Below are positions 14,935-46,751 of a DNA stretch of 64,000 nt, piece after piece. Under the pieces are notes generated by a model, which saw only the letters and a program-made list of their open reading frames with translations, searched no databases and was not told the origin of the DNA. Both the position numbers and the translations under genes were made by a program. Every line of letters starts with the position of its first letter. Position 1 is the stretch's first letter. The DNA comes from Selaginella moellendorffii (Eukaryota; Plantae; Lycopodiophyta): the NCBI RefSeq assembly GCF_000143415.4, contig NW_003314326.1, positions 941,609 to 1,005,608 on the forward strand. Direction: 5' to 3'.

Positions 14935-16578
14935 TTAGTCCGTGGCATGTTCTTTGTTATGAAACCATTCTCCCTTGTCAGATGACAGTATAGCCTCGTA
15001 AATACGAGTATCCTTCTCGAGCATGCCCAGGTCCTCTTTAGTCAAGTTGGAGATCACCTTCTGGAAAGTGGATTCATCCATGAACCATATCCAAGCTGCC
15101 ACCAGCCCAACTACAAAGTCGATGAGCTTTGACTCGGCACCAATAACCTCAGGGACAATCCCGGACAGGTCGATAGTGCTCTGCTTGTTCTTGAGTTTGC
15201 TGAAGTCCACCCTACTCAAAAACTTGTTCATGATATCTGACCTCGGAACGTTCATACTGAAGACTGTTCTAATAGGACCAGCAACTGATTCATATCCAGC
15301 GACAGCTTCAAGCTCGCCTCCATCTAATGACACCTGTCGCCTCTCAATGAAAATCCTGTGAAAGATATCTGCAGGATCAAAAGCATAGCTCCGGTAAACT
15401 CTCGGATTCCTCCACCACTCTAAGAATGTCCAGGCGGCTTTGGCTTTGATCATGTCGTCGCTTCCGTGAATAATGGATCTGATTAGATACTCGGATGCTT
15501 GCTTGGAAACTGCTTCACGAGGAAGGAAGCCCACTGGTGCTACTCTGACAATGTGGTCCAGGAATTTGATTACGTCACCGTCCACAACCGCCAAAGGAAT
15601 TATTCCAAATTCTCGCACAGCTAATACGAAGTTGTGTAACTGACCTGGTGTTAATACAACCTTTGCTAGAATCTTGTTTGCAGTATGCCTTGCTCCTTCA
15701 TGATATGATGTTTCGAGAACAATGAGCTGAATCATGCATTTGATACTTGCGAAGGTTCTAGCTTCATCAGGTATGTTCCAGCAAAGGAGCTCCAGTAAAG
15801 TCCCGTGATCGGAGCTGCATTCTTGGTCTTCATCCAAAAACCAATTGATGATGTAAGTGAAAAGATTTACACCTAATGCTTTACTGAATCCCTCTCTCAT
15901 AAACGCCTCATGTACACGTGGGCCAACATGGACGGCAAGTATATGCGCTTCAGGGTCCTCCTCAATATTTATCAGCCACAACACGAGGGAGTCCCAACCC
16001 AGTAGTTTGACCGCCAAGAAAACTGATGACTCCACCAAAGTCAGAATGTAGAACAGCCTCATCCCATACACAAAGTTGGCCACCTGACCTGCATCCGACG
16101 ACGAGATGCGTTTGTAGTCTCCTGACTCGAGCCGAGCAAGGGAGAAACCAAATGTTACAGCTGCACTACACACTTGGAGCCCATGGAATATCAGATGTAT
16201 GGACAGGTCCTTTATCATTTTTGTCACCTCCATCCCATAGCGAATGCGACAACCTAGGAAAACGCAGTACAATGGAGAGGTAAGTATCCCTCCCCAGGTA
16301 CTTTCCTGGAACCTAGCGGCTACTACGTAATCAACATTCTTGCTGACTAGGAACACTCGCACACCTTCTGAAAGCAGCAGACCAGAAATGAGCTTGAAAT
16401 CGTAGGGCTTGAGCTGAGAGACATAACCCCCCAGCAAGACCACTGTGGCACCCACGAACGCTATTTGCCCTATGTATGTTGCACCCTGCTCCAAGGCTGC
16501 CAATACGAGAGCCACATATTTCACTTGCACTGACAGACTCACCAATCTCTGAGCTCTCGCTCTCAACTCAACGTCCAT
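14935..16578 (-). CDS. BLE2-like multi-TM/ARM-repeat family protein, copy 1 (intronless)
   Basis: LEQGATYIGQIAFVGATVVLLGGY...DFKLISGLLLSEGVRVF resembles the N-terminus of the BLE2/At5g18980-type family; first ATG at 16578. Confidence 0.7.
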   Translation of the reverse strand: MDVELRARAQRLVSLSVQVKYVALVLAALEQGATYIGQIAFVGATVVLLGGYVSQLKPYDFKLISGLLLSEGVRVFLVSKNVDYVVAARFQESTWGGILTSPLYCVFLGCRIRYGMEVTKMIKDLSIHLIFHGLQVCSAAVTFGFSLARLESGDYKRISSSDAGQVANFVYGMRLFYILTLVESSVFLAVKLLGWDSLVLWLINIEEDPEAHILAVHVGPRVHEAFMREGFSKALGVNLFTYIINWFLDEDQECSSDHGTLLELLCWNIPDEARTFASIKCMIQLIVLETSYHEGARHTANKILAKVVLTPGQLHNFVLAVREFGIIPLAVVDGDVIKFLDHIVRVAPVGFLPREAVSKQASEYLIRSIIHGSDDMIKAKAAWTFLEWWRNPRVYRSYAFDPADIFHRIFIERRQVSLDGGELEAVAGYESVAGPIRTVFSMNVPRSDIMNKFLSRVDFSKLKNKQSTIDLSGIVPEVIGAESKLIDFVVGLVAAWIWFMDESTFQKVISNLTKEDLGMLEKDTRIYEAILSSDKGEWFHNKEHATD

Positions 16579-17152
16579 TTTTATTTTGGCCACTCTACAG
16601 CTATGTCACAGCTCACAGCGATGTACACCAACGCAATTACAAGCAGGGAGTTGGGAAGGTGTCGTAAACTAATATAGCACATGAAAGCACCATTCCCTTG
16701 AGTATGAGACAATGCAAGCAAAGCATAATGTAACAGGACAGTGCGGCTTGGAGTTTTGAGGGGAAAAAAAACACAAAACGTTTCCTGGGCATCTTATTTT
16801 ACAAGGTTGCTGCTCAGCATTAGATACTTCACTAGTTTGAAATCTAGGCAAAGGAGATTCAAGGCTCAAAAGACTAGTTTGAAATGCAGGCAAAGCAGAT
16901 TCAAGACTCACATCATCAACTATGTGTAATGAAAACATCAATTATGTTGACTAATACCATATAGATCTCAACATAGTCTTCGCAAAGACTGTTAGCTGGA
17001 AGGACGTGTAAGCTTTACAAGCCTTTATCGCATACCATCTTCTCTGGTTCAGCGCTTACGTTCCAGAGGAGTTCGAAACCCTTGAGAAGCTCTTCGAGTT
17101 CTCAAATATTTGGAGCAGTAAAAGTGTGAGCCAACGAAATGTCACAAGCGTA

Positions 17153-18263
17153 TCACTCTCCATTGAGAATGATTTTGTAAATCACAGCGCTGTAAATGCC
17201 ATCACCTGGGCTGGTTCTCGACTCTTCCACCTCGCGCAACTCCAGGTTGTGCTCAGATGCCTCGTTAAAGAATGCTCGATCAGTGCTGAAAAAAAGAAAC
17301 AAAAGATTCAAGAAAACACAAAAAGAGAAGCGAAGTGACCTTTGTATGCGAGAGATGTAAGCAAGAAAAAACTTGCGGCAGTGGTGATGTTGCAAAAGCT
17401 TGTTGACAGTCCTGAGTAGCGGAGGAATGTTGCATTGCTGGTAGCGTGATAGGATCTGTTCAAGGAGAAACTTGGAGTCAAAAAGCTTCCATCAAAAGGA
17501 TATAAATGTCGGCTCCAAGGATGTAGTCAAATCCCTCCGGATGCTTGTCAAGGATGAGAGAGAGCTGTTCTTCATTCCCCCACTCAAGCTTTTCACAGGC
17601 AATCCCTGCAATGAGGAAAAGAAAAAAAAACAAACGAGATCTCTCATATATCAGTGAGAAAGAACCCACGTGATAGCAACGCCGTGTCCTGCTGAAGCGC
17701 CACGTTTTTCCTCATGATCTAGCAGCGATCCCCAAACTTGTTTTAAGAAACCATGCATGAAAATTCCTGCCTTTAAAACGGTGTCATTGTGATCAGTCAT
17801 GACGACTTGGCGGCAGCCAATCCTTCCACACAAAAGGCCAGTCACTCCTACAAACCATGAAAAAAAACAAGTGTTAGAAAAAAAAAAGAGAGAGAAAGAA
17901 GAGAAAACCATGCGAAGAACTTCATACCAACACCAGAGCCCAGCTCAATGATCGAAGCTCCTTGAAAAATTTGGCTATGATCCACAATGTAATTGAGGAG
18001 AAGCTCGGTGCCAGGCCAGATTATCTGGCCAGTGAGGTCGTAATCCGCTGCGAGCTATCGCATTGAAAGAGAGGAACCGAGAGAGAAAGAACACACTCAC
18101 TGGAAGAGCATTGTAGGCTGAGCACAGGAATCTCGTGATGGCCGATGGAAATGCGCTGCTCAACGTAGCTAGCAGTGGATGATAGAATCGATTAAATCCT
18201 AGTAGCTTACTTCTCGTCCAGGAACAGCGATCCAATACCTCCTCCATAGTCGTCCTCGTCCAT
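17153..18263 (-). CDS. Family-16 (METTL21-like) protein lysine methyltransferase, copy 1
   Basis: DYDLTGQIIWPG, IIELGSGVG, VVMTDHN, KLEWGN, FDYILGADIC; includes a GC-AG intron (17719-17770) and an AT-AC intron. Confidence 0.87.
17446..17503 (-). other. U12-type AT-AC intron, 58 nt (paralogues at 23252-23309, 40112-40169, 47573-47630)
   Basis: 5' ATATCCTT, branch-like TCCTTGAAC, 3' CAC; removal restores GADICYQQCNIPPLL. Confidence 0.85.
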
Positions 18264-18321
18264 CGCATGAGCCCTAAGAGAATAAGAATCTTAGTAAAGC
18301 CCTAGGGGCTAGGGTTTATGA

Positions 18322-20313
18322 ATGGCGGCAAGATTTGGATGCTCGCGCATTGCCCGGCTATCGCGCATTGCCCAGGTACCCAGCCGCGCCAGATCGATCG
18401 CCACGCTGCAGGTAGCTCAGGAATCTACCGAGGATGAGGGGGACGATCTTGCCGCTTGCTCCAATGCGGGCGTCTGGAGCTACAGGGATTTCGCGCAGAT
18501 GCTCCACTCTTCCTCCTCTTCCAGTCATTCGATCGAGGCGGCGGTGGGCAGGCTACGCCGGGAAATCTCCACTGACGCCGTGGTGAAGATCTTCCAGTGC
18601 CTCAAGGACGCCGATCTCGCCTGGGAGCTCTTCCAGTGCCTCTCCTCCCCTCGATTCGGCTTCCAGCACAGCGTCCACACGGGGAACGCGCTCCTGGATG
18701 TGTTTGCCAGAACCAAGCGCCACAGGGAGGCCGGGAATCTCCTCAAGAACGAGCTCGCGACGACATTTCTGCCGGATGTGGAGACCTGGAACGTCCTCAT
18801 CACCGGCTACTGCCTGGCTCGCGAGCCCGAGGAGGCATTCGCGGTTATTAGGGAGATGGAGGAGGATTACGGCGTGGCGCCGTCGCTCAAGACCCACAAT
18901 CTCGTCCTCCACGGCCTGTGCAAGTCGGGCAAGGTCCTCGCGGCGATGGATCACTTCGAGACGGTGAGGAGATCCATGCCGGTGAGTGCTGCGACGTTCT
19001 CGATCCTCATCAATGGCCTCGTCAAGGCAGGTATGATGATCCAGGCTCACTCCCTCGCCCAGGAGACCACGACCAATGGCTGCACGATCGACATCCACAC
19101 GTACACCGCCATTGTGGATTGGCTCGCCAAGAACAAGAAGATCCAAGATGCCGTGGCTCTGATGGAGAAGATCACTGCCAATGGGTGTACTCCCACCATC
19201 GCCACCTACAACGCTCTCCTCAATGGTCTTTGCAAGATGGGACGGCTCGAAGAAGCCATCGATCTCCTTCGCAAGATCGTCGACAATGGCTGCACACCGG
19301 ACGTGGTCACTTACACCTCGCTCATTGATGGCCTCGGCAAGGAGAAGCGATCCTTCGAAGCTTACAAGCTTTTCAAGGAGATGGCTTTGCGGGGACTGGT
19401 TCTTGACACCGTCTGCTACACTGCTCTCATCCGGGGACTCCTCCAGGCCGGGAAAATCCCGCAAGCTTCCTCGGTCTACAAGACAATGACGTCCCAAGGC
19501 TGCGTTCCAGACGTGGTAACACTCAGCACCATGATCGACGGCCTCTGCAAGGCTGGGAGGATTGGAGCGGCAGTCCGGATCTTCAAGTCGATGGAAGCTC
19601 GAGGCCTGGCTCCAAACGAGGTGGTGTACAGCGCTCTCATCCACGGCCTGTGCAAGGCCAGGAAGATGGACTGTGCGCTGGAGATGCTGGCCCAGATGAA
19701 GAAGGCGTTTTGTACCCCGGACACCATCACTTACAACATCCTCATCGACGGGCTTTGCAAGAGTGGCGACGTTGAGGCAGCACGGGCCTTCTTCGACGAA
19801 ATGCTCGAGGCCGGATGCAAGCCCGACGTTTACACGTACAACATTCTCGTATCGGGGTTCTGCAAGGCCGGGAACACCGACGCTGCCTGTGGAGTCTTCG
19901 ACGACATGAGCTCTAGCCACTGCTCGCCAAACGTTGTCACCTACGGGACTCTCATCTCCGGCCTCTGCAAGCGCCGCCAGCTGACCAAGGCCTCTTTATA
20001 CTTCCAGCACATGAAGGAGAGAGGCTGCCCTCCGGACAGCTTCGTCTACAGCAGCTTGGTGGACGGGCTCTGCAAGTCGGGGAAGCTCGAAGGTGGCTGC
20101 ATGCTCTTTGACGAGATGGAGAGGAGCGGTGTTGCAAACAGCCAGACGCGGACCAGGCTGATCTTCCATCTCTGCAAAGCGAACCGGGTCGACGAGGCCG
20201 TGTCGCTTTTCAACGCCATCAGGAAGGAAGGAATGCCGCACCCTTACGCCTACAACTCGATAATCAGCACGCTCATCAAGTCGGCAAAGGTGAACCCGTG
20301 TACCAGGAGATGA
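18322..20313 (+). CDS. P-class PPR protein, copy 1, with C-terminal frameshift
   Basis: Tandem 35-aa motifs (PDVVTYTSLIDGLGK, etc.); 10-nt deletion near 20295 relative to copy 5. Confidence 0.9.
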   Translation: MAARFGCSRIARLSRIAQVPSRARSIATLQVAQESTEDEGDDLAACSNAGVWSYRDFAQMLHSSSSSSHSIEAAVGRLRREISTDAVVKIFQCLKDADLAWELFQCLSSPRFGFQHSVHTGNALLDVFARTKRHREAGNLLKNELATTFLPDVETWNVLITGYCLAREPEEAFAVIREMEEDYGVAPSLKTHNLVLHGLCKSGKVLAAMDHFETVRRSMPVSAATFSILINGLVKAGMMIQAHSLAQETTTNGCTIDIHTYTAIVDWLAKNKKIQDAVALMEKITANGCTPTIATYNALLNGLCKMGRLEEAIDLLRKIVDNGCTPDVVTYTSLIDGLGKEKRSFEAYKLFKEMALRGLVLDTVCYTALIRGLLQAGKIPQASSVYKTMTSQGCVPDVVTLSTMIDGLCKAGRIGAAVRIFKSMEARGLAPNEVVYSALIHGLCKARKMDCALEMLAQMKKAFCTPDTITYNILIDGLCKSGDVEAARAFFDEMLEAGCKPDVYTYNILVSGFCKAGNTDAACGVFDDMSSSHCSPNVVTYGTLISGLCKRRQLTKASLYFQHMKERGCPPDSFVYSSLVDGLCKSGKLEGGCMLFDEMERSGVANSQTRTRLIFHLCKANRVDEAVSLFNAIRKEGMPHPYAYNSIISTLIKSAKVNPCTRR

Positions 20314-20592
20314 CTCGCTGGTGGAGGCCCGATCGCGTCACCTACAACGCACTGCTCAATGGGATGATCACAGCAAACAGGATCGACAGAGCTCATTTTT
20401 ATTACCTGGAGATGACCGGCAGAGGCTACGTTCCTCCCATGTCCATACTGACGACTGACTGAAGGAGCAAGCTTGATACTCAGTGTTGTTGGCTGTGACG
20501 TCGATCTCCAGATGTGGTACCAATGCCTGTGTACAGTACATATTGTATTTGTGAATTACAAGAACTTCGTGTTAGAAAATGGTGGTTACTGG

Positions 20593-22329
20593 CTAGAGAC
20601 CAGCTATATAAACTCCCTTACCTTCTAAAGATAGTGTGTGTCTGTTGTGAAACCATTCTCCCTTCTCAGATAACAGTATAGCCTCGTAAATACGAGGACT
20701 CCTCTTGAGCATGCCCAGCTCCGCTTCACTCAAGTTGGACATTGCCTTGTGGAAAGTGGATTCATCCATGAACCATATCCAAGCAGCCACCAGCCCAACT
20801 ACAATATCGTCTAGCTCTGACTTGGCACCAATAACCTCAGTGACAATGCCAGACAGGTTGATAGTGCTTCGCTTGTTCTTGAGTTTACTGAAGTCCACCC
20901 TACTCAAAAACTTGTTCATGATACCTGACCTCTGATGTTTCTTACTCAAGACTGTTATAAACGGACCAGTAACTGATTCATATCCCGAACCTGTTTCGAG
21001 CTCGGAATGGCTTACTTGTCTTTTAGATATTGACCACTGCCTATGAATGAAAATCCTGTGAAAGATATCTGCAGGATCAAAAGCATAGCTCCGGTAAACA
21101 CTCGGATTCCTCCACCACTTTAACAATGTCCAGGCCGCTTGGGCTTTGATCTCGTCATCGCTTCCGTCAATAATGGATCTGATTAGATACTCGGATGCTT
21201 GCTTGGAAACTGCTTCACGAGGAAGGAAGCCCACTGGTGCTTTTGTGACAATGTGGTCCAGGAATTTGATTACGTCACCGTCCACAACCGCCAAAGGAAT
21301 TATTCCAAATTCTCGCACAGCTAATACGAAGTTGTGTAACTGACCTGGTGTTAATACAACCTTTGCTAGAATCTTGTTTGCAGTATGCCTTGGTCCTTCA
21401 TGATATGGTGATCCGAGAACAATGAGCTGAATCATGCATTTGATACTTCCAAAGGTTCTAGCTTCATCAGGTATGTTCCAGCAAAGGAGCTCCAGTAACT
21501 CCTCGTGATCGGAGCTGCGTTCTTGGTGTTCTTCATCCAAAAACCAATTGATGACGTAAGTGAAAAGATTTACACCTAATGCTTTACTGAATCCCTCTCT
21601 CATAAACGCCTCATGTACACGTGGGGCAACAACATGCATTGTAAGTTCACCTTCCCCCGCAATACATATCAGCCACAACACGAAGGAGTCCCAACCCAGT
21701 AGTTTGACCGCCAAGAAAACTGATGACTCCACCAAAGTCAGAATGTAGAACAGCCTGATCCCATACACAAAGTTGGCCACCTGCCCTGCATCAGACGATG
21801 AGATGGGTTTGTAGTCTCCTGACTTGAGCCGAGCAACGGAGAAACCAAGTGTTACAGCTGCACTACCCACTTGGAGCCCATGGAATATCAGATGTATGGA
21901 CGCCTGTTTTATAAATATTGGCGGCAGCCTCCTCCGATAGCAAATGTTATAACCTAGGGAAGCGCAGTACAATGACGAGGTGAATATCCCTCCTAAGATA
22001 CTTTTGTGGTACCCAGCGGCTACTAAGTAATCAACATTCTTGCTGCCTAGGAACACTCGCACACCCTCTGAAAGCAGCAGACCAGAAATGAGCCTGAAAT
22101 CGTAAGACTTCAGCTGAGAGACATAACCCCCCAGCAGGATCACTGTGGCACCCACGAACGCTATTTGCCCTATGTATGTTGCACCCTGCTCCAAGGCTGC
22201 CAATACTAGAGCCACATATTTCACGTGCACTGACAGACTCACCAATCTCTGTGCTCTCCTCGTAAGCTTTTGATGTTCTTCCGTGATCCCATCTGAGCCC
22301 CCAACTGGTATTGCTGTATCATTCTCCAT
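20593..22329 (-). CDS. BLE2-like TM/ARM protein, copy 2 (578 aa)
   Basis: Intact ORF paralogous to copy 1. Confidence 0.75.
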   Translation of the reverse strand: MENDTAIPVGGSDGITEEHQKLTRRAQRLVSLSVHVKYVALVLAALEQGATYIGQIAFVGATVILLGGYVSQLKSYDFRLISGLLLSEGVRVFLGSKNVDYLVAAGYHKSILGGIFTSSLYCASLGYNICYRRRLPPIFIKQASIHLIFHGLQVGSAAVTLGFSVARLKSGDYKPISSSDAGQVANFVYGIRLFYILTLVESSVFLAVKLLGWDSFVLWLICIAGEGELTMHVVAPRVHEAFMREGFSKALGVNLFTYVINWFLDEEHQERSSDHEELLELLCWNIPDEARTFGSIKCMIQLIVLGSPYHEGPRHTANKILAKVVLTPGQLHNFVLAVREFGIIPLAVVDGDVIKFLDHIVTKAPVGFLPREAVSKQASEYLIRSIIDGSDDEIKAQAAWTLLKWWRNPSVYRSYAFDPADIFHRIFIHRQWSISKRQVSHSELETGSGYESVTGPFITVLSKKHQRSGIMNKFLSRVDFSKLKNKRSTINLSGIVTEVIGAKSELDDIVVGLVAAWIWFMDESTFHKAMSNLSEAELGMLKRSPRIYEAILLSEKGEWFHNRHTLSLEGKGVYIAGL

Positions 22330-22579
22330 TGTAATTTCGGCTGCTCTACAGCTATGTCACGGCGATGTACACCAACGCAATTACAAGCAGGGATTTGGGA
22401 AGCTGTCGCAGTATCGTAACAAATATAGCACACGAAAGCACGATTCCCTTGAGTATGAGACAATGCAAGCAAAGAACAATGTAACAGGACAGTGCATCTT
22501 GGAGTTTTGAGGGGTCAAAACAACAAAATGTTTCGTGGCAGCTTATTTTACAAGGTTGCTGCTCAGCAATAGATCCTTC

Positions 22580-22740
22580 ACTAGTTTGAAATCTAGGCAA
22601 AGGAGATTCCAGGCTCAAAAGACTAGTTTGAAATGCAGGCAAAGGAGATCCAAGGCTCAAAAGACTAGTTTGAAATGCAAGCAAAGGATCCAAGGCTCAA
22701 AAGACTAGTTTGAAATGCAAGCAAAGGAGATTCAAAACTC
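22580..22740. repeat. 42-bp tandem repeat, about 4 units (about 2 units at paralogous sites near 16830, 39553, 46982)
   Basis: ACTAGTTTGAAATGCAGGCAAAGGAGATTCAAGGCTCAAAAG-like units start at 22580, 22622, 22664 and 22704. Confidence 0.9.
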
Positions 22741-22922
22741 AGATCATCAAGTGTGTAATGAAAAGATCAATTACGTTTACTAATACCATATAGATACCAA
22801 CATAGTCTTCGCAAAGACTGTTTGCTGTGTAGTTTCCAAGCCTTTAATGGCATACCATCTTCTCTGGTTCACTGCTAACGTTTCCAGAGGAGTTTGAAAC
22901 CATTGAGAAGCTCTTCGAGTTC

Positions 22923-24070
22923 TCAAATATTTGGAGCAGTAAAGGTACGACAATTGTGACAATCTCGCTTGAGAATGATTTCGTAAATCACACCGCTGTA
23001 AATGCCATCACCTGGGCTGGTTCTCGACACTTCCACCTCGCGCAACTCCAGGTTGTGCTCAGACGCCTCGTTAAAGAATGCTCGATCAGTGCTAAAAAAA
23101 AGAAAGAAAAGATTCAAGAAAACACAAAAGAAGAAGCAAAATAACCTTTGTATGCGAGAGATGTAAGCAAGAAAAAACTTGCGGCAGTGGTGGTGTTGCA
23201 AAAGCTTGTTGACAGTCCTCATTAGCGGAGGAATGTTGCATTGCTGGTAGCGTGATAGGATCTGTTCAAGGAGAAACTTGGAGTCAAAAAGCTTCCATCA
23301 AAAGGATATAAATGTCGGCCCCAAGGATGTAGTCAAATCCCTCCGGATGCTTGTCAAGGATGAGAGAGAGCTGTTCTTCATTCCCCCACTCAAGCTTTTC
23401 ACAGGCAATCCCTGCAATGAGGAGAAAAAAAAAACAAACAAACGAGATCTCTCATATATCAGTGAGAAAGAACTCACGCGATAGCAACGCCGTGTCCTGC
23501 TGAAGCGCCACGTTTTTCCTCATGATCTAGCAGCGATCCCCAAACTTGTTTTAAGAAACCATGCATGAAAATTCCTGCCTTTAAAACGATGTCATTGTGA
23601 TCAGTCATGACGACTTTGCGGCAGCCAATCCTTCCACACAAAAGGCCAGTCACTCCTACAAACCATGAAAAAAAAAACAAGTGTTAGAAAAAAAAAAAGA
23701 GAGAGAGAAAGAAGAGAAAACCATGCGAAGAACTTCATACCAACACCAGAGCCCAGCTCAATGATCGAAGCTCCTTGAAAAATTTGGCTATGATCCACAA
23801 TGTAGTTGAGGAGAAGCTCGGTGCCAGGCCAGATTATCTGGCCAGTGAGGTCGTAATCCGCTGCGAGCTATCGCATTGAAAGAGAGGAACCGAAAGAACA
23901 CACTCACTGGAAGAGCATTGTAGGCTGAGCACAGGAATCTCGTGATGGCCGATGGAAATGCGCTGCTCAACGTAGCTAGCAGTGGATGATAGAATCGATT
24001 AAATCCTAGTAGCTTACTTCTCGTCCAGGAACAGCGATCCAGTACCTCCTCCATCGTCGTCCTCGTCCAT
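22923..24070 (-). CDS. Family-16 methyltransferase, copy 2
   Basis: Near-identical to copy 1 with splice sites retained; longer C-terminus (KRDCHNCRTFTAPNI). Confidence 0.8.
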
Positions 24071-24143
24071 CGCATGAGCCCTAAGAGAATAAGAATCTTA
24101 CTCACAAAAGATGCCCTAAAGCCCTAGGGGTTAGGGTGTATGA

Positions 24144-25482
24144 ATGGCGGCAAGATTTGGATGCTCGCGCATTGCCCGGCTATCGCGCATTGCACAGGTA
24201 CCCAGCCGCGCCAGATCGATCGCCACGCAGCCGGTAGCTCAGGAATCCACCGAGGATGAGGCGGACGATCTTGCCGCTTCCTCCAATGCGGGCGTCTGGA
24301 GCTACAGGGATTTCGCGCAGATGCTCCACTCTTCCTCCTCCTCTTCCAGGCATTCGATCGAGGCGGCGCTGGGCAGGCTACGCCGGGAAATCTCCACTGA
24401 CGCCGTGGTGAAGATCTTCCAGTGCCTCAAGGACGCCGATCTCGCCTGGGAGCTCTTCCAGTGCCTCTCCTCCCCTCGATTCGGCTTCCAGCACAGCGTC
24501 CACACGGGGAACGCGCTCCTGGATGTGTTTGCCAGGACCAAGCGCCACAGGGAGGCCGGGAATCTCCTCAAGAACGAGCTCGCGACGATATTTCGGCCGG
24601 ATGTGGAGACCTGGAACGTCCTCGTCACCGGCTACTGCCTGGCTCGCGACGAGGAGGCATTCGCGGTGATGAAGGAGATGGAGGAGGATTACGGCGTGGC
24701 GCCGTCGCTCAAGACCCACAATCTCGTCCTCCACGGCCTGTGCAAGTCGGGCAAGGTCCTCGCAGCAATGGATCACTTCGATCACAGTGAGGAGATCCAT
24801 GCCGGTGAGCGCTGCGACGTTCTCGATCCTCATCAATGGCCTCGTCAAGGCAGGTATGATGATCCAAGCTCACTCCCTCGCCCAGGAGACCACAACCAAT
24901 GGCTGCACGATCGACATCCACACCTACACCGCCATTGTGGATTGGCTCGCCAAGAACAAGAAGATCCAAGAGGCCGTGGCTCTGATGCAGAAGATCACTG
25001 CCAATGGGTGTACTCCCACCATTGCCACCTACAACGCTCTCCTCAATGGTCTTTGCAAGATGGACGGCTCGAAGAAGCCATCGATCTCCTTCGCAAGAAC
25101 GTCGACAATGGCTGCACGCCGGTCACTTACACCTCGCTCATCGATGGCCTCGGCAAGGAGAAGCGATCCTTCGAAGCTTACAAGCTTTTCAAAGAGATGG
25201 CTTCGCGGGGACTGGCTCTCGACACCGTCTGCTATACTGCTCTCATCCGGGGACTCCTCCAGACCGGGAAAATCCCGCAAGCTTCCTCGGTCTACAAGAC
25301 GATGACGTCCCAAGGCTGCGTTCCCGACGTGGTAACTCTCAGCACCATGATCGACGGCCTCTCCAAGGCCGGGAGGATTAAAGCGGCAGTCCGGATCTTC
25401 AAGTCGATGGAAGGTCGAGGCCTGGCTCCAAACGAGGTGGTGGACAGCGCTCTCATCCACGGCCTGTGCAAGGCGAGGAAGA
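24144..25482 (+). pseudogene. PPR copy 2, 3'-truncated, with two compensating frameshifts
   Basis: +1 near 24783 and -1 near 25062; ends at the junction with TEX10 intron sequence. Confidence 0.85.
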
Positions 25483-32179: not shown

Positions 32180-32313
32180 CGTAGCGTTTTCTACTCACTC
32201 AAACAGCCTCCTCCTGCGGCCAAGAAGAAAACTGAATGTCTTTCTTGGCATGTTGGGCGAGATTAACGATATTAAATGGAAAGATAAACAACAACAATGA
32301 TTCAGTTCGAGTT

Positions 32314-35483: not shown

Positions 35484-36553
35484 CATGGTTGGTCCCGACC
35501 GTTCCGAACGCCGACCGGCCGACCGGCCGACCGTGGTTATCGACCGGCTGTGAAAATGCCGAACGGCCGAACGGTTCACAAAATTTTTTTGATAAAAAAA
35601 AAAACATTTTAAGTAAAACCATATTAATAAAAGTAGAAAAACCAAAGCATTAAACCAAACCAAACCAAACCAAACCATGGTATAGCATTCAAGAAAATGA
35701 ACTTTGATATCGCATCATCTAAGTTCATGTTTCTTGCATCATCAAGCATTTCCCCAATATTGCCATCTCGCATTCACTTTCGACCAATAGATGATCCTTC
35801 ATAGCCTATAGAAGCACTCATAGGCTGAGATTGACTAGCACTTTGTGTACCAGCTCCAGAAGCAGATGCCCCATCAAAATGTCTATTCTGTAGATTTGCT
35901 GTAGAAGGTAAAGACGAAAGGGCATTTGCAATTTGCTCCACAAACATTCGGCGAGCTTGGTTCTGAACATGAAGAGGAACATTTGAAGCACTACATACTT
36001 CAATATCACGCCCAGAAACTTTAGCAAGATGCGCCTTGATTCGTTTCGGCGGACCGCCATACATTTTACCACAATAATTACATTTCCAACGCCCAGCTCT
36101 TTTGCCGGAAGCATAAGGAGTGAGCTTGGTAACATGGGACCATGCCCAATCGGGCGCCATCACTCAATTGTGCCAGAATTGCTACGAATCTCTAGAATCA
36201 AATCTCTGAAATCACTGGAATTTCCATTTTAGGGCAAAAATTTCAAGCGTTGCGGACTGCGCGATTTGATTTGCGAGGCAGCGAGCTGCTCTGCTCCACA
36301 CTCAATCGAAAGCAGAGGCAGTGGTGATGGCAATCAAAAGCAGAGGCAGTGGTGATGGCAATCAAAAGCAGAGGCAGTGGTGGTGATGGCGATAGCCGCT
36401 GGAGCATCAGAAATCTAGCGCGATCACAATTTTTTTTTTTCACATTTTTTTTTTTGCCGAACAGAATACCGAACGGAGCTGTCCGACCGCGTTCGGCCGA
36501 CCGCGTTCGGCGGCGGTCGGAATGATGGCCAAACGCATTCGGGACCAACCATG
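35484..36553 (-). mobile_element. Internally deleted hAT DNA transposon nested in the Copia pol gene
   Basis: 15-bp TIRs CATGGTTGGTCCCGA / TCGGGACCAACCATG; 8-bp TSD CTTCCACC (35476-35483 and 36554-36561); subterminal CCGACCG motifs; BED zinc-finger ORF 35774-36163 (WSHV...WKCNYC...KAHL...C). Confidence 0.93.
36303..36391. repeat. 28-bp tandem repeat x3 inside the hAT element
   Basis: CAATCAAAAGCAGAGGCAGTGGTGATGG-like units at 36303, 36331 and 36359. Confidence 0.9.
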
Positions 36554-39384
36554 CTTCCACCTGTGGCGCTGATGGCTCGGGCTCCACCGACACTTGCAAC
36601 CTGGCACCAGCGCCGTGGTCACGTGAACGAGCAACAGCTAAAAAAGGTGGATGTTCCTGTGGCGCCTGGGAGCGCGCTGCCCTTTTGCGAAGCTTGTGTT
36701 GGTGGAAAACACCACGTTTTTCCTTTTCCACAGGTTTCTCATTCTCGAGCAAGTTCTGTTCTTGAGTTGGTACACTCGGACGTTTGTTCGATTGTGGTTG
36801 AATCTTTGGGAGGCAAACGTTACGTAGTCACCTTCCTGGATGATTACACGCGGTACCTGATCGTGTACCTGCTGGCTCACAAGTGAGAGGTGTTCTCCTG
36901 CTTTTGCCAATACAAGGCTTTGGTAGAAAATCTACACAGCTGTTTAGTTCATGTGCTCCGCTGTGATCGTGGAGGAGAATTCATCTCTGGAGAATTCGAG
37001 ACGTTTTGTGCTGAAGCTGGGGTCCAGCGCCAGTTTGCTGTCCCTGATGCTGCCCAGAATGGTGCTGCCGAGAGGGTGAATCGCACCATCATAGAAGCTG
37101 CGCTTCATGTGGGAATGCCGGCTGCTTTCTGGGGTGAGGCAGTTAACACGGCTGTTTATGTTCGAAACCGGTTGCCAACACGTGCCCTGCCTGGGAAGAC
37201 CACTCCTTATGAACTTTGACTGGTCACGCAGCTGGTTACGATCATCTCCGCATTTTTTGCTGTTTTGCCTACGCACACGTTCCACACAAGCAACGCTGAA
37301 AGCTGGAGTCAAAGGCTGAGCCATCCATTTTCCTGGGATATTTGGAAGGCATGAAAGGATATCGCCTTTATTCTCTCAAGCGCAAAACTTTGCTGGAAAG
37401 ATGGGATGTGCTCTTTGATGAGAGCAAGCTGTACAAGGATCTCTGCTGGTGGTAACGTGGTGGTTCCTCCAGCACTGCCACCACGCCCTCCAGCTACGCC
37501 TCTGCAAGAATCTCCTCCAGTGAGAACACCTAGCTTCTCTGAAGAGCTGATGAACACTTACTTCGAGGGCGACGAGGAATTTCAAGCTGCTCCTGAGTTC
37601 TTCCTCGGTTCATCTTCAGTGGGAGCTGGACGTGGATCATCACCTTCAGTGGGAGCTGGAAGCAGGTCGCCAACTTCAGTGGGAGCTCTCCCAGACTCTC
37701 CACTTGTTCCACCACCTGTGGTCCACCCTCCAGCACGTCCTGAACCTCGACGCTCTGCTCGAGTTCCCGTACCATTGCGGCTGCAACTGGAAGCTGAGCA
37801 ATCTCGTCCCTTCTTTAGTTTTGGAAAAATTAAAAAGAAAGGAACGCACCAGGCTAACTTCGTGGCTGCTAATCCAGGGCGAATCCCCATTCCAGCGAAT
37901 GTTGACGAGGCATTAGCTGTACCTCATGCTGCCCAGTGGCGAGAAGCCATGAATGCTGAAATGCATTCGCATGAGCGAAACAATACAATGACAAAGACAA
38001 CCTTACCTGAAGGTGCTCACCTTGAGAGCTCGAAATGGATTTACACAGTCAGATGGAACTGTAGCAAAGTTCAAGGCCAGGTTTGTCGCACGGGGATTCA
38101 GCCAGATTCCAGGTTTGGAATACATGGAGACGTACTCACCAGTTGTGAAGTTGACCTCTGTGCGAGTGATCCTTGCACTGGCTGCCAAGTACGACCTGGA
38201 ACTGCACCAGTTGGACGTTCGCACTGCTTTCCTGCACGGCAAGTTGAACGAGGAGGTCTACGTCACGCAACCACCTGGATTCGTCAAACCTGGTGAGGAA
38301 CATCTTGTTTGCAAGCTGAATCGCGCCCTGTATGGGCTTAAACAATCCCCGAGGGTTTGGTTTGAACGCATTGATGCGTTCTTCAAGAGCCTGGGGTGTG
38401 TTCCTCTTGCAGTGGAAGGAAACGTGTACCTGTACAAGAGTGGTGACGATTTTCTCCTGGTTGCTGTGTACGTTGACGACTGCATTCTCGGTGCAAAAAC
38501 CCGCCACCTGCTGGACGAGATGAAAAAGAAGCTGAGTGAAGAATTTGAGATGTCTGACCTGGGCGAGCTTCGCCATTTCCTTGGCATCCAAATTATACGC
38601 AATCGAGGAGCACGCACCTTGAGCTTGACACAAGCTCACTATGCAAGGGAGATCTTGGAACGCTTCCATATGCTGGAATGCTCTTCCCTGGCCACACCTC
38701 TTGAGGTCAATCACAAACTCAGCCGTGACATGGCCCCTGTCACAGAGGAAGAACGAGAGTACATGGCCACGGTGCCATATCGTCAAGCAGTGGGAAGTCT
38801 TGTTTATTTGATGCTGGGAACGCGACCAGATCTCGCCTATGCTCTTGGGATGGTCTCCCAGTTCCTCGAGAACCCCGGACCTGCGCATTGGCAAGCTTTC
38901 CGCTACGTTCGAGGTACCTTGCATTTGCAGCTTCACTATGGCGCTGCTGTGTCACAGGAACTTCATGGGTACTCTGGATGCGGACTGGGCGGGCGACCAG
39001 GACTCAAGGCGCTCTACCTCCGGGTATGCGTTCTTGCTCCATGGGGCTGCTGTGTCCTGGAGCAGTAAGCGCCAGCCGCTGGTGGCTCTGTCCTCGACAG
39101 AGGCAGAGTACATTGCCCTAACCGCTGCCACCCAGTTCTGCCGTGACCTGCCCCAGATTCCTGCTTGCACCGGCCCTATGGTGCTGTTCTCGGACAACCA
39201 ACGTGCTCTTGCACTGGCCGCCAATCCTCGCTTCCATTCTCGGACGAAACACATCGAGATTCGTTTCCACTACGTGCGGGAACAAGTCCAAAATGGAAAG
39301 TTGTTGCTGGAATATTGCCCCACCGAGGCAATGGTGGCTGATATACGTAGTCCATCCTCTCAGCTGATCGAGCCAGAGTGGGAG

Positions 39385-39476
39385 TGTCGAGATGTCAGTC
39401 TCGATCAGCTGACGTGGCACGTCCACGTGGCCCTTGAGTCGGGAGTGTTGTGTCCATCCCTTTTAACATCACAACA
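39385..39476 (+). repeat. 3' LTR (92 bp)
   Basis: Matches the 5' LTR and is followed by the TSD. Confidence 0.92.
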
Positions 39477-39783
39477 GTTTTGAGGGGTAAAAACAACAAA
39501 ATGTTTCATGGCAGCTTATTTTACAAGGTTGTTGCTCAGCAATAGATCCTTCACTAGTTTGAAATTTAGGCAAAGGAGATTCAAGGCTCAAAAGACTAGT
39601 TTTAAATGCAGGCAAAGGAGATTCAAAACTCAGATCATCAACTAATACCATATAGATACCAACATAGTCTCCGCAAAGACTGTTTGCTGTGTAGTTTCCA
39701 AGCCTTTATGGCATACCATCTTCTCTGGTTCACTGCTAACGTTTCCAGAGGAGTTTGAAACCATTGAGAAGCTCTTCGAGTTC

Positions 39784-40951
39784 TCAAATATTTGGAGCAC
39801 TAAAGGTACGACAATTGTGACAATCTCGCTTGAGAATGATTTCGTAAATCACACCGCTGTAAATGCCATCACCTGGGCTGGTTCTCGACACTTCCACCTC
39901 GCGCAACTCCAGGTTGTGCTCAGACGCCTCGTTAAAGAATGCTCGATCAGTGCTGAAAAAAGAAACAAAAGATTCAAGAAAACACAAAAAAAGAAGCAAA
40001 ACAACCTTTGTATGCGAGAGACGTAAGCAAGAAAAAACTTGCGGCAGTGGTGGTGTTGCAAAAGCTTGTTGACAGTCCTGATTAGCGGAGGAATGTTGCA
40101 TTGCTGGTAGCGTGATAGGATTTGTTCAAGGAGAAACTTGGAGTAAAAAAGCTTCCATCAAAAGGATATAAATGTCGGCTCCAAGGATGTAGTCAAATCC
40201 CTCCGGATGCTTGTCAAGGATGAGAGAGAGCTGTTCTTCATTCCCCCACTCAAGCTTTTCACAGGCAATCCCTGCAATGAGGGAAAAAAAAAAAAAACAA
40301 ACAAACAAACAAACGAGATCTCTCATATATCAGTGAGAAAGAACTCGAGAGAAACTCACGCGATAGCAACGCCGTGTCCTGCTGAAGCGCCACGTTTTTC
40401 CTCATGATCTAGCAGCGATCCCCAAACTTGTTTTAAGAAACCATGCATGGAAATTCCTGCCTTTAAAACGGTGTCATTGTGATCAGTCATGACGACTTTG
40501 CGGCAGCCAATCCTTCCACACAAAAGGCCAGTCACTCCTACAAACCATGAAAAAAATCAAGTGTTAGAAAAAAGAAAAAGAGAAAGAAGAGAAAACCATG
40601 CCAAGAACATCATACCAACACCAGAGCCCAGCTCAATGATCGAAGCTCCTTGAAAAATTTGGCTATGATCCACAATGTAATTGAGGAGAAGCTCGGTGCC
40701 AGGCCAGATTATCTGGCCAGTGAGGTCGTAATCCGCTGCGAGCTATCGCATTGAAAGAGAGGAACCGAGAGAGAAAGAACACACTCACTGGAAGAGCATT
40801 GTAGGCTGAGCACAGGAATGTCGTGATGGCCGATGGAAATGCGCTGCTCAACGTAGCTAGCAGTGGATGATAGAATCGATTAAATCCTAGTAGCTTACTT
40901 CTCGTCCAGGAACAGCGATCCAATACCTCCTCCATCGTCGTCCTCGTCCAT
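39784..40951 (-). CDS. Family-16 methyltransferase, copy 3
   Basis: Near-identical paralogue with splice sites kept. Confidence 0.8.
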
Positions 40952-41019
40952 CGCATGAGCCCTAAGAGAATAAGAATCTTACTCACAAAGATGCGCTAAA
41001 GCCCTAGGGGTTAGGGTTT

Positions 41020-42337
41020 ATGAATGGCGGCAAGATTTGGATGCTCGCGCGGCTATCGCGCATTGCACAGGTACCCAGCCGCGCCAGATCGATCGCCATG
41101 CAGCCGGTAGCTCAGGAATCCACCGAGGATGAGGCGGACGATCTTGCCGCTTGCTCCAATGCGGGCGTCTGGAGCTACAGGGATTTCGCGCAGATGCTCC
41201 ACTCTTCCTCCTCTTCCAGTCATTCGATCGAGGCGGCGCTGGGCAGGCTACGCCGGGAAATCTCCACTGACGCCGTGGTGACGATCTTCCAGTGCCTCAA
41301 GGACGCCGATCTCGCCTGGGAGCTCTTCCAGTGCCTCTCCTCCCCTCGATTCGGCTTCCAGCACAGCGTCCACACGGGGAACGCGCTCCTGGATGTGTTT
41401 GCCAGGACCAAGCGCCACAGGGAGGCCGGGAATCTCCTCAAGAACGAGCTCGCGACGATATTTCGGCCGGATGTGGAGACCTGGAACGTCCTCATCACCG
41501 GCTACTGCCTGGCTCGCGAGCCCGAGGAGGCATTCGCGGTTATTAGGGAGATGGAGGAGGATTACGGCGTGGCGCCGTCGCTCAAGACCCACAATCTCGT
41601 CCTCCACGGCCTGTGCAAGTCGGGCAAGGTCCTCGCGGCGATGGATCACTTCGAGACGGTGAGGAGATCCATGCCGGTGAGCGCTGCGACGTTCTCGATC
41701 CTCATCAATGGCCTCGTCAAGGCAGGTATGATGATCCAAGCTCACTCCCTCGCCGAGGAGACCACAACCAACGGCTGCACGATCGACATCCACACCTACA
41801 CCGCCATTGTGGACTGGCTGGCCAAGAACAAGAAGATCGAAGAGGCCGTGGCTCTGATGGAGAAGATCACTGCCAATGGGTGTACTCCCACCATCGCCAC
41901 CTACAACGCTCTCCTCAATGGTCTTTGCAAGATGGGACGCCTCGAAGAAGCCATTGATCTCCTTCGCAAGATCGTGGTCACTTACACCTCGCTCATTGAT
42001 GGCCTCGGCAAGGAGAAGCGATCCTTCGAAGCTTACAAGCTTTTCAAGGAGATGGCTTCGCGGGGACTGGCTCTCGATAGCGTCTGCTACACTGCTTTCA
42101 TCCGGGGACTCCTCCAGGCCGGGAAAATCCCGCAAGCTTCCTCGGTCTACAAGACGATGATGTCCCAAGGCTGCGTTCCCGACGTGGTAACTCTCAGCAC
42201 CATGATCGACGGCCTCTCCAAGGCCGGGAGGATTGGAGCGGCAGTCCGGTTCTTCAAATCGATGGAAGCTCGAGGCCTGGCTCCAAACGAGGTGGTGTAC
42301 AGCGCTCTCATCCACGGCCTGTGCAAGGCCAGGAAGA
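41020..42337 (+). pseudogene. PPR copy 4, 3'-truncated but with an open frame
   Basis: In-frame 24-nt deletion (DNGCTPDV lost); same TEX10 junction as copies 2 and 3. Confidence 0.8.
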
Positions 42338-43908
42338 GTACGTTCTTTCCCTTCCCCGCTCTTTCTATTTTATAAATTGATTTCGCCAGGAAAGTCAGGA
42401 CCGTAGAGAAACCCAAGCTCCCTCTGTTTCTGAGCAGTTCAGTAAGAAATGGCTGGTCTCATTTCCCAGGCTTCTTTGGGAGCTCAAGTGTAATCAACTT
42501 GCGTCTTCAAAGGTTTGTGTCAAGAGGCCATTGCCATTTAATCGCATTCGCATCGTAATGTTTCTCTTTCTTTTTCGCAGATTGTCCTAGAGATGCTACT
42601 CCGCCTTGGAAAGTTTGCAGTAGCTTTAGCAACAGATTTTGGAATGCTTCAATCGGCAATGATACCGTTTTTCTGCACTGTGTTGCCAGCCAAGGAAACG
42701 CCAGGTTCCGTTGCGTCTCCTAAATCTAGCAAAGAAACTGACTTTCCACATTCCAGACAAGTATTTGTACGGTCCGTTTATTAAGCTTCCTAGAGACTGC
42801 CAAGAGATTGCTGTACTACTTCAGCGGCTTCCAACCTTTCTTTCTCAAAGCACTGTTAGCTTGCTGTCTGTGTAAGTGCGCATTATGGCTTACATCTTCT
42901 AACCTGGAAAACCTCGACTCGCAGCTCCGAACATGGATCTGCAAACTTTGGTCCGCTTGTTGGAAGTGGTGCGAGTGTCCTTTGTTCAAGGTCGGGTTGA
43001 AGTTGCAAACTTTTCCAGTTTCCTTTTTACGCTGGTGGTGGAGTGCTCGCATGCACACGGTAAATATCTCCTTTTTTCTTGTCGGGCAATTTATAACTGC
43101 TGATACTCTTTTCAGAAACTGCTGAAGAGAGAAAGAAACACTGGATAATACTGGGTGTGGTGTCCCGTAGCCTATTCCAGATTGGAGATATCGACGTAGT
43201 TATGCATTTGTTGGCCAAGCCAATGTCCGAACATCTGGTGCGTAAGTTTTCACACCTTTTGCTGTTTCTAACAGTCAATTACAGTCGGCTCGGCCTTCCC
43301 CAATGTTGTTAGCTAGTTTACTAAAAATTGTGGCTACTCTGAGCCACGATGTGGAACATGTGGAGGTCCCTGAGTTGCTATTGAGCGTTCTGGTGGCGCA
43401 AACCGCGAGCTTTGCGGTCTCAAGACTTCTGGTATACACCCGCGTTTTATCATGTGTATGATAATCTGAATTGCAGGCTAAAGACCAAATGGTGATGGTT
43501 ATTGTTCGCAATGCGGTGGACTTAGTTTTCAAGAACAAGAGGTTTGCACAATCCTTGATGAAGGAATTAGCTCTGAATCTATCAGGTTCGTTTGTTATGT
43601 TCTTCTCTCTTACGTCTGAGTGTCTATTGTCTTCAGGTGGCAAAGATCAAGTTTATGCTGTGGGAATTTTGACGAACGAAATATGCAAGCAAAACGCGAT
43701 CCAGAAGCACCTCGAGTTTTCAGATGTTGGTGAGATATTTCGAGCAGTAAAGGTACGACTAGTATGAGAACTTCATGTTTCACATACACGTTGTTTTGTG
43801 TCACAGACAATTTTGAAGGAGGCACGCATGGACCAAGCTAAGTCCAAGCAGCTTTTCTACTTAGAGATCAGCATCCGACATGCGTTTGGATCGCAAGTCC
43901 TAGTTTAA
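42338..43908 (+). pseudogene. TEX10 3'-half duplicate
   Basis: Copy of 12305-13898; shares the 11-nt deletion with the 25483 copy. Confidence 0.9.
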
Positions 43909-44818
43909 GCTGTGGCAAAGAGCTCGGGCATTCCGTGGCTTTTGGGAATCCTGTGCTTGAGCTTTAATATTATCTGCCGCATCCTGGAAAGGTCAGTCGA
44001 TTTTCCGGGCTCGGCGATGGCGGCATCAGTTTTTTTCTTCTCCGCAGCCGGCTTGGTGGAGATTAGTTCTGAGACGGCACCCCAGTAATTTAGTGGTGCC
44101 CTCGCATGGAACTCTTCTCGGGACTCCAACGATACCTGCATGAGGAAGAGAGGTCAGTTTAAAACATAAAATCTATCTTCTTGACGACCTTTTCCTTCTC
44201 ACGATTTGCTTTTTTACTAGCTTCGACTTCGCGTTCCGTTTTGCAAAGAGCTCTCGTTTGTGCTCCTCGGCAGCGCAAAGAGTTTTTGCAAGCCTGTCCC
44301 TCTCGTCATTCTCCTTCGCTTCTAAAGCTAGCGCGTTTTTCCTGGCAAGAAACCGTAAGTGATTTTCTAAAAAGCTTCGTAGCGACTTACCTCTTCCATT
44401 CCAGGAATTTAAGATGTGATGGATCGAAGGTAGCTGTGGCGGTGCTGGTGCTGAAGATGTCCTGAGGATCATCAACGTCGTTTTTGTTTCTCTCGAGAAG
44501 ATCGTGAAGCTCCTGAACGCCACTGGTGGTGAAGCTCTTTTCGTTCAAGCCGCCGTCATCCTCGGCATCCCAGCGAGGATCAAGATCAAACGCCTCGGTG
44601 AAAGAAGCCGTCCGAATTGCCTCTACTTCTTCACTCACCTGGATCTTCTCCTCGTGCCTGTGCAACATGCTGATTGAAGGCGCTGCTCGCGACTGCTTCT
44701 CAAGGACATCGTACGTATCTTCCATGCATACGCTCGCCACGGTTGTGACAGTGATGCTCTCAAAGCTGTGACAGACAGACGGCGGTGCTCGTGGATCGAA
44801 CTCGCCATGGCGTTCCAT
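43905..44818 (-). pseudogene. Clathrin light chain copy 4, frameshifted
   Basis: 1-nt deletion at 44230/44231 in exon 2. Confidence 0.75.
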
Positions 44819-45048
44819 CGTAGCGTTTTCTACTCACTCAAACAGCTCCTCTTCCCGCGACCAAGAAGAAAACTGAATGTCTTTCTTGGCATGTTGGGCG
44901 AAGGAGAAGCTGATTAACGATATTAAATGGAAAGATAAACAACAACAATGATTCAGTTCGAGTTCTAAAACCATTTTCCCTTGTTAGATGACATTACAAG
45001 AATTACAAGAATTACAAGAACTTCGTGCAAGAAAATGGTGGTTACTGG

Positions 45049-46751
45049 TTAGAGACCAGCTATACAAACTCCCTTAGCTTCTAAACATAGTGTGTGTCTG
45101 TTGTGAAACCATTCTCCCTTCTCAGATAACAGTATAGCCTCGTAAATATGAGGATTCCTCTTGAGCATGCCTAGGTCCGCTTCACTCAAGTTGGACATTG
45201 CCTTCTGGAAAGTGGATTCATCCATGAACCATATCCAAGCTGCCACCAGCCCAACTACAAAGCTGTCTAGCTCAGTGGCAATGCCAGACAGGTCGATAGT
45301 GCTCCGCTTGTCCTTGAGTTTGCTGAAGTCCACCCTACTCAAAAACTTGTTCATGATATCTGAAGTCCAAGTACTCAAGACTGTTCTAATAGGACCAGCA
45401 ACTGATTCATATCCAGCGACAGCTTCAAGCTCGCCTCGATCTAATGACACCTGTTGCCTCTCAATGAAAATCCTGTGAAAGATATCTGCAGGATCAAAAG
45501 CATAGCTCCGGTAAACTCTCGGATTCCTCCACCACTTTAAGAATGTCCAGGCGGCTTCGGCTTTGATCTCGTCATCGCTTCCGTCAATGATGGATCTGAT
45601 TAGATACTCGGATGCTTGCTTGGAAACTGCTTCACGAGGAAGGAAGCCCACTGGTGCTCCTCTGACAATGCGGTCCAGCAAATTGATTACGTCATCGTCC
45701 ACAACCGCCAAAGGAATTATTCCAAATTCTCGCACAGCTAATACTAAGTTATGTAACTGACCTGGTGTTAATACAACCTTTGCTAGAATCTTGTTTGCAG
45801 TATGCCTTGGTCCTTCATGATATGATGGTCCGAGAACAATGAGCTGAGTCATGCATTTAATACTCCCAAAGGTTCTAGCTTCATGAGGTATGTTCCAGCA
45901 AAGGAGCTCCAGTACCTCCTCGTGATCGCAGCTGCATTCTTCTTCTTCACCATCCAAAAAATAATTGATGACATAAGTGAAAAGATTGACACGTAATCCT
46001 TTTCTGAATCCCTCTGTCATAAACGCCTCATGTACATGTGGGCCAACATGGTGTGCAAGTACATGCGCTTCAGCCTTACCCGCAATACTTCTCAGCCACA
46101 ACCCGAAGGAGTCCCAACCCAGTAGTTTGACCGCCAAGAAAATTGATGACTCCACCAAAGTCAGAATGTAGAACAGCCTCATCCCATACACGAAGTTGGC
46201 CACCTGCCCTGTACCCGACGACGGGAGGGGTTTGTAGGCTCCCGACTTGAGCCGAGAAAGGGAGAAACCAAATGATACAGCTGCACTACCCACTTGGAGC
46301 CCATGGAATATCAGATGTATGGACAGGTTCTTTATCATCTTTGACCCCTGCATCCTCCCACACCAAATGCCATAACCTACGAAAGCGCAGTAGTATGGCG
46401 TGGTAAGTATCCCTCCCCAGGTACTTCCCCGGAGCCGAGAGGCTATTAAGTAATCAAAATTCTTGCTGACTAGGAACACTCGCACACCCTCTGAAAGCAA
46501 CAGACCAGAAATGAGCCTGAAATCGTACGACTTGAGCTGAGGGACATAACCCCCCAGCAGGACCACTGTGGCACCACGAACGCTATTTGCGCTAAATATG
46601 TTGCACCTTGCTCCAAGGCTGCCAATAGTAGAGCCACATATTTCACTTGCACTGACAGACTCACCAATCTCTGTGCTCTCCTCTTAAGATTTTGATGTTT
46701 TTCTGTGTTCCGATCTGAGCCCCCAACTTGTATTGCTGTATCATTCTCCAT
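45049..46751 (-). pseudogene. BLE2-like copy 5 with a single 1-nt frameshift near 46574
   Basis: GCACCACG versus GCACCCACG in paralogues; the remaining 505 codons are open, so a recent lesion or sequencing error is possible. Confidence 0.7.

Follow-up and report, generated by a model that had tools for sequence, protein, structure and literature searches.

A tandem array of genes for putative membrane-anchored ARM-like proteins in Selaginella moellendorffii, with signs of positive selection on a single loop

Among the plant proteins described so far, rice Ptr (Pi-ta2), with isoforms of 864 and 905 amino acids (aa), carries an N-terminal transmembrane (TM) region of about 234 aa, the strong helices of which span 85-106, 165-185 and 214-232, and, after it, armadillo (ARM) repeats (PMC5966436, PMC7070119). 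It is a single-copy gene, present 0-1 times per Oryza genome, whose specificity polymorphisms fall at residues 789-899 (PMC7070119, PMC13621481); susceptible alleles (Amane) bear a 4-aa KPEK insertion (PMC5966436), and Pi-ta2-like paralogues are reported on Oryza chromosome 12 (PMC13621481). OsBLE2, in turn, is a brassinosteroid-induced growth gene (PMC5172446). In this work we analyzed a stretch of 64,000 nucleotides (nt) of the lycophyte Selaginella moellendorffii (assembly GCF_000143415.4, contig NW_003314326.1, positions 941,609 to 1,005,608 of the forward strand; the window hereafter), which harbors five intronless paralogous open reading frames (ORFs), c1 to c5, for TM-ARM-like proteins embedded in a tandem array. 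A sequence-only reading of the window had assigned them to the BLE2/Ptr type and had proposed a cluster of non-NLR (nucleotide-binding leucine-rich repeat) immune receptors under diversifying selection. On balance, we lean towards the view that the array encodes lineage-specific, selectively maintained membrane-anchored ARM-like proteins, in which a cytosolic loop might be adapting to a changing partner.

Maintenance, divergence and selection of the paralogous ORFs

All five minus-strand paralogues listed by the sequence-only reading, that is three intact ones (c1, c2 and c4), one with a single frameshift (c5) and one broken (c3), are indeed present at the places that it gave (Table 1), and the peptides that it had quoted for two variable blocks and for the invariant segments around them match the translations exactly. 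The contrast on which that reading was built was also recovered, in that the ORFs diverge strongly while the neighboring modules of the same tandem units stay near-identical. Indeed, units 2 and 5 differ by 10.3% in the ORF versus 2.2% in the upstream intergenic region, 2.4% in the methyltransferase gene and 2.9% in the pentatricopeptide repeat (PPR) gene, and units 1 and 5 by 9.1% in the ORF versus 2.3-2.8% in the flanks; over all the copies, the ORFs differ by 9-15%. In units 1 and 5, the stretch of about 500 nt that precedes the ORF has diverged as well (8.9%), and the idea that the island of divergence reaches into the promoter, which holds for this pair, was abandoned because it fails for units 2 and 5.

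The divergence has left the reading frames open. No stop codon is found in four ORFs despite 70-129 substitutions each from the consensus, whereas a neutral simulation gives each copy a probability of 0.7-5% of remaining free of stops, and all four together one of about 1e-7 on the assumption of independence; moreover, about 10 of the 11 internal insertions and deletions are multiples of three. The statement that the ORFs stay in frame is thus borne out, and the copies are, judging from their sequences, kept open by selection.

Transcription was assessed by reading about 12% of each of three runs of stranded RNA-seq from a single study. The intact copy c4 is covered over its full length at a depth of 4-15, similar to that of the neighboring plus-strand module, and its reads show no fixed differences from the assembly. 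The first mates map to the plus strand, so that the RNA of c4 derives from the minus strand, in accordance with the orientation of the ORF; expression, the absence of which would have spoken against a functional array, is therefore observed for this copy, and from the correct strand. The remnant c3 gives almost no signal. As for c2, 36% of its 31-mers are present in run X1, 35% of those words being common to other copies; this run contains RNA, since one of its Logan contigs carries the spliced form of c4. The minor intron of c4 (Table 1) has a length that is not a multiple of three, so that its removal would shift the frame, and it takes away the region of the first membrane helix. The possibility that the whole array consists of pseudogenes was rejected on account of ORF maintenance and transcription.

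Selection was analyzed on four sequences (c1, c2, c4 and c5), both by pairwise counting with the Nei-Gojobori method (NG86) and by maximum likelihood (ML) under the Goldman-Yang model (GY94), the latter with region-specific topologies. Over the whole gene, the ratio omega of nonsynonymous (dN) to synonymous (dS) divergence is 1.0-1.3 in the pairwise NG86 comparisons and 1.43 by ML (P 0.008). The TM core is conserved according to counting (about 0.4, P about 0.02), with an ML estimate of 0.53 that is not significant, and the C-terminal half yields about 1 with NG86 and 1.40 with ML (P 0.08). The first of the two variable blocks gives the highest values, 2.7-2.9 with NG86 (binomial P 0.002-0.015, independent pairs) and 4.6 with ML (likelihood ratio test 12.5, P 4e-4), while the second one gives about 1 with NG86, dS and dN both being high, and a nonsignificant 1.44 with ML. 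The diversifying selection that had been postulated for the variable blocks in general is therefore retained for block 1 and not for block 2; in other words, the codon comparisons reasonably support positive selection for block 1 only. A local mutation hot spot does not explain this signal, because dS in block 1 (about 0.10) is not above the gene average, with a dN of 0.25-0.29. Eight residues inside block 1 (S110, G113, G114, I115, T117, C122, G126 and I129) are invariant. The comparison with the co-duplicated PPR gene, which had been suggested as a control, shows purifying selection on this neighbor (dS 0.072, dN 0.018 and omega 0.26 between the copies of units 1 and 5). According to the mechanism that we propose, selection would conserve the membrane helices, and the loop joining helices 2 and 3 would change its amino acids three to five times faster than synonymously.

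The informative sites are clustered along the gene and favor different quartets by segment, with quartet B supported at codons 65-79 and again at codons 504-566, and quartet C throughout block 1. On this sequence evidence, the paralogues are recombinant mosaics, the blocks of which would have been shuffled among them through recombination or gene conversion. A peculiar segment lies in c2 at 21000-21060 (codons about 430-447), where about 60 nt have been replaced, including a 12-nt insertion, and both dS and dN are high; it encodes HRQWSISKRQVSHSELETGSG, the other copies having ERRQVSLDGGELEAVAG, and it resembles either the product of a complex mutation or a short tract copied by conversion from an unseen donor.

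Several points weigh against adaptive change in the loop. The usable sequences are only four, and block 1 was chosen after inspection of the data; a Bonferroni correction over about 14 windows brings the ML P to about 0.006 and the counting P to 0.03-0.2. With 2-3 changes in many codons of block 1, omega could be inflated by multi-nucleotide mutation or by micro-conversion from diverged donors, and recombination breaks single-tree models, for which the region-specific topologies are a partial remedy. As block 1 corresponds to the least constrained loop of the family, relaxed constraint explains part of its variability, and most of the C-terminal domain has an omega of 1-1.4, compatible with weak constraint. 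In addition, the dS of the ORFs (0.08-0.125) exceeds that of the PPR genes (0.07-0.10) and of the non-coding flanks (0.02-0.03), which means that part of the contrast between ORFs and flanks reflects deeper coalescence or less homogenization; age and uneven gene conversion, which the sequence-only reading had itself named as an explanation that would undo its case, thus partly apply. Lastly, c4 is the only copy for which expression is shown.

These points can be brought together in a different scenario, namely the ordinary birth-and-death of dispensable duplicates under relaxed constraint, in which multi-nucleotide mutation, micro-conversion and a post hoc window would have produced an omega above 1 and the proteins would have no recognition function. 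The whole-gene counting values and those of the C-terminal half are what such a scenario would give, as is the position of block 1 in a long and poorly conserved loop, and the fact that two of the five copies are already broken and that the copies are mosaic suits it as well. However, relaxation alone should bring omega to about 1 and not above it, as found for block 1 by ML; four copies without a stop and the prevalence of in-frame indels are not expected under it, the invariant scaffold residues of block 1 argue for a structured element, and c4 is expressed. We consequently regard this scenario as rather unlikely, though it deserves serious consideration.

Predicted structure and family relationships

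The AlphaFold2 model obtained with an 86-row alignment has a mean predicted local distance difference test (pLDDT) score of 71, and it replaced a single-sequence model (pLDDT 43) that was discarded. Helices are predicted at residues 17-66, 75-107, 137-170 and 181-224 with pLDDT 80-95, and an all-alpha domain comes after them; four membrane helices are supported by hydropathy. When the variable blocks are mapped onto the prediction, as had been proposed, both fall in loops with pLDDT <50 (Table 1). Block 1 aligns with a much longer and poorly conserved loop of the relatives, the least conserved one family-wide, and its net charge is positive (+5 in c2), which under the positive-inside rule would leave both termini, together with this loop, facing the cytosol. 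The Foldseek matches to ARM proteins (E 4e-3 to 6e-2), the TM-scores of the atlas (<0.5) and the language-model scores (0.81-0.83) amount to weak matches, and yet all of them are of the ARM/HEAT type; a sequence search of the PDB with a profile of the paralogues gave no meaningful match. In the model that we put forward, the four long N-terminal helices would act as a membrane anchor preceding an all-alpha ARM-like solenoid, and the loop and the solenoid, lying on one cytosolic face according to the positive-inside rule, might form a joint variable protein-binding surface that tracks one or more changing partners.

A Pfam search of the ORFs gave no match, ARM included. An exhaustive phmmer search retrieved 80 matches, with E values down to 2.6e-23 against family members and, below 1e-30, only the own models of the locus. 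The remaining matches are land-plant TM+ARM proteins of 750-1000 aa, aligned at residues 35-110 and 143-220, from Selaginella, Diphasiastrum, Marchantia, Riccia, Calypogeia, Pinus, magnoliids and monocots; for those that have been named, the name is "ARM repeat superfamily protein". This relationship is in agreement with the hhalign comparison between the paralogues and 24 family members (probability 99.1%, E 7.5e-19, query 35-290) and with the BLASTP match to the S. moellendorffii protein LOC9657217 (P0082), the closest relative and the product of a single-copy intronless gene, which extends over residues 39-352, into the first ARM-like repeats (E 5e-25). In the maximum-likelihood tree, the clade of the window joins LOC9657217 with a support of 99/97 on a very long branch, because of which the exact placement is uncertain.

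The resemblance to the BLE2-type TM+ARM proteins that the sequence-only reading had noticed at the N-terminus therefore holds for the membrane domain and the start of the helical domain, and does not extend to the C-terminal ARM part, which is truncated and divergent. Neither hhalign nor BLASTP aligned the proteins with the family past residue 352; the C-terminal motifs of the family (PRIRRF...TTSELE.F.VFSG.VG..RH) do not occur in them, and they have 547-578 aa versus 720-1000 aa, being 200-400 residues shorter. For these reasons, we consider them a truncated and strongly derived offshoot rather than typical members. The BLE2 label itself comes from the UniRef names of the matches: the Hordeum protein P0061, a direct match that is also in the grass family retrieved with P0024, is named "BLE2 protein", and so is the Zizania protein P0174.

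Exact-protein look-ups of c2 and c4 across the public assemblies found none. In our reading, the array is young, and it has so far been found only in S. moellendorffii. The same genome holds a second tandem cluster, made up of longer TM+ARM genes (821, 796 and 457 aa), at GL377651.1:530277-552985. Adjacent locus tags are also found in Eleusine (PR202_gb19959/19960), Paspalum (BS78_01G347400/347500) and Juncus (LUZ60_008215/008216), which suggests that canonical TM+ARM genes often come in tandem pairs in monocots.

The family relationship leads to the question of a function in immunity. An immune-receptor role of the array is possible, but the specific proposal of a Ptr-like non-NLR receptor cluster, the variable blocks of which would recognize pathogen molecules, appears improbable to us. 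The behavior of the locus (tandem copies, pseudogenes, sequence exchange and localized positive selection) is indeed that of a resistance cluster, the broad layout of the published Ptr protein, with a TM region preceding ARM repeats, is shared (PMC5966436, PMC7070119), and the reported Pi-ta2-like paralogues on Oryza chromosome 12 (PMC13621481) may be set beside a family member from O. glaberrima, P0147, on a chromosome-sized record of 25 Mb taken as chromosome 12. Nevertheless, no Oryza protein of 864 or 905 aa is found among the 120 matches listed in the family-wide searches that started from grass members, and a C-terminal KPEK occurs in none of the proteins retrieved. P0147 was considered as a candidate for Ptr and rejected, being intronless, 826 aa long, located at 18.7 Mb and different in its C-terminus. 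Furthermore, Ptr is single-copy with a specificity that resides in a tail absent here (PMC7070119, PMC13621481), and the only other characterized namesake, OsBLE2, is linked to growth (PMC5172446). A still broader conjecture, that BLE2/Ptr-type membrane-anchored ARM proteins constitute an ancient non-NLR recognition class, of which the lycophyte array would be an independently expanded cluster with a cytosolic loop that binds effectors, is in our opinion even more doubtful.

Organization of the array and its neighboring modules

The window maps at 100% identity to scaffold GL377630.1 of GCA_000143415.2, and the public annotation was carried over by that match. According to self-comparison, Pfam and annotation, a unit is composed of module A and a P-class PPR gene on the plus strand, and of the TM-ARM-like ORF and a Methyltransf_16 gene on the minus strand, unit 3 being a stump in the self-comparison. 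The features are listed in Table 1.

Table 1. Positions of the array, the paralogous ORFs and the neighboring features in the window
Feature	Position	Strand	Description
Whole tandem array	12304..50682	.	Five units, partly rearranged (self-BLAST, repeat families)
c1	14935-16578	-	Intact, 547 aa counted from its ATG
c2	20593-22329	-	Intact, 578 aa
Block 1 in c2	21901..22020	-	aa 104-143, loop between predicted helices 2 and 3
Block 2 in c2	21625..21690	-	aa 214-235, linker from the four-helix membrane domain to the helical C-terminal domain
c3	about 27596-29012	-	Pseudogene, 5'-truncated, abutting a PPR fragment
c4	32314-34011	-	Intact, 565 aa; RefSeq LOC112351712
Minor intron in c4	33750..33924	-	175 nt, GT..AG, minority of reads
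c5	45049-46751	-	Single 1-nt deletion at about 46575, open elsewhere
PPR, unit 1	18322..20313	+	P-class, 663 aa; Pfam PPR_2 E 1e-174
PPR, unit 2	24144..25532	+	Truncated, internal stretch out of frame relative to the paralogues
PPR, unit 4	41020..42375	+	Truncated, 451 aa
PPR, unit 5	48469..50682	+	Full length, 737 aa
Methyltransf_16	22923..24070	-	Between c2 and the PPR of unit 2; PF10294 in the mapped annotation
Further Methyltransf_16 copies	39784-40951, 47244-48400; about 17091-18250 (by homology)	-	
Module A	29716..32300	+	Spliced, transcribed; introns of 47-68 nt
Module A, other copies	12304-14900, 25482-27600, 42370-44990	+	
Ty1/copia retrotransposon fragment	34190..39476	.	RVT_2 E 4e-67 on ORF 38013-39068

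The presence of intact, frameshifted and broken copies side by side clearly supports the tandem birth-and-death that the sequence-only reading had inferred. The multi-gene unit would probably have been multiplied through unequal crossing-over, and copies are lost over time, c3 being dead and c5 newly frameshifted. In c1, a 51-nt in-frame deletion just after the ATG is accompanied by a changed C-terminal tail, and the frame of c3 is broken by deletions that include those of 1, 8 and 17 nt. The public gene models cover only c4 and c5 among the copies, the latter as part of an old fused model (SELMODRAFT_446149, 850 aa) in which it is joined to the methyltransferase; for c1 and c2, no protein is found in the public protein sets.

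As regards the neighbors, the TM-ARM-like ORFs are preceded, at about 600 nt and on the same strand, by the Methyltransf_16 genes, which are arranged divergently to the PPR genes, and the PPR copy of unit 2 is probably decaying. A weak match to a TEX10-like TPR (E 4e-6), falling just short of the Pfam cut-off, comes from one ORF piece of module A. Given the many fixed differences in the reads assigned to the module A copy of unit 4, the expressed copy must be a different one; splicing the unit-4 copy by the read joints did not yield a single ORF. A Ty1/copia fragment splits unit 4, where it interrupts the collinearity of the unit and parts c4 from its methyltransferase and PPR genes, and c4 is transcribed despite this insertion beside it.

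The public S. moellendorffii assembly holds both haplotypes, and this, together with the scarcity of gene models, might suggest an artefact of collapsed or mis-joined haplotypes, or else an array of dead pseudogenes only, but we judge this very improbable, as the ORF differences, rearrangements, copia insertion and truncations far exceed allelic divergence, the ORFs are maintained and RNA reads match c4 without any fixed difference.

Comparison with described systems

Members of the TM+ARM family are conserved in plants ranging from liverworts to grasses, and an expressed, truncated and lineage-specific offshoot with an adaptive hot spot would point to the TM2-TM3 loop as a functional interaction surface, for which the paralogues represent natural loop-swap variants that can be used in experiments. 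If Ptr proves to be a member of the family, then the array offers a seed-free comparison for the diversification of such proteins; if it does not, the locus would be a clean case of module-specific divergence in an otherwise near-identical tandem array.

With the land-plant TM+ARM family, the proteins of the window share an N-terminal four-helix membrane domain bearing the family motifs (LE.GA..G..AF..ATV.LLGG...DF..I..LLL.EG.R.F and N...YG..LFY.L.L.E...FL) as well as variability in the loop that joins helices 2 and 3, and the genes are intronless like those of LOC9657217 and of Oryza P0147. They differ from these relatives in that the helix 2-3 loop is about 50-70 residues shorter and the subfamily is seen only at this locus.

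The likeness to rice Ptr (LOC_Os12g18729, AWV95397.1) is drawn from its published description and concerns a TM region that is followed by ARM repeats without NLR domains. Natural variation in Ptr sets a recognition specificity, its immune function having been demonstrated in rice only. Ptr is however a longer protein encoded by a single-copy gene with introns, whereas the shorter proteins of the window are encoded by five intronless tandem copies; moreover, its variation lies in a C-terminal tail that has no counterpart in the proteins of the window, where the peak falls in the TM2-TM3 loop.

A comparison can finally be made with the clusters of resistance genes. Although the genes of the window differ from those of such clusters in that they lack any known immune domain (NB-ARC, LRR, kinase or other), they share with resistance-gene clusters, NLR and others, a common mode of evolution, made up of tandem birth-and-death, pseudogenes, exchange between paralogues and mosaics, with an omega above 1 that is confined to a putative binding segment (block 1), while the scaffold is conserved and the neighboring genes are under purifying selection.

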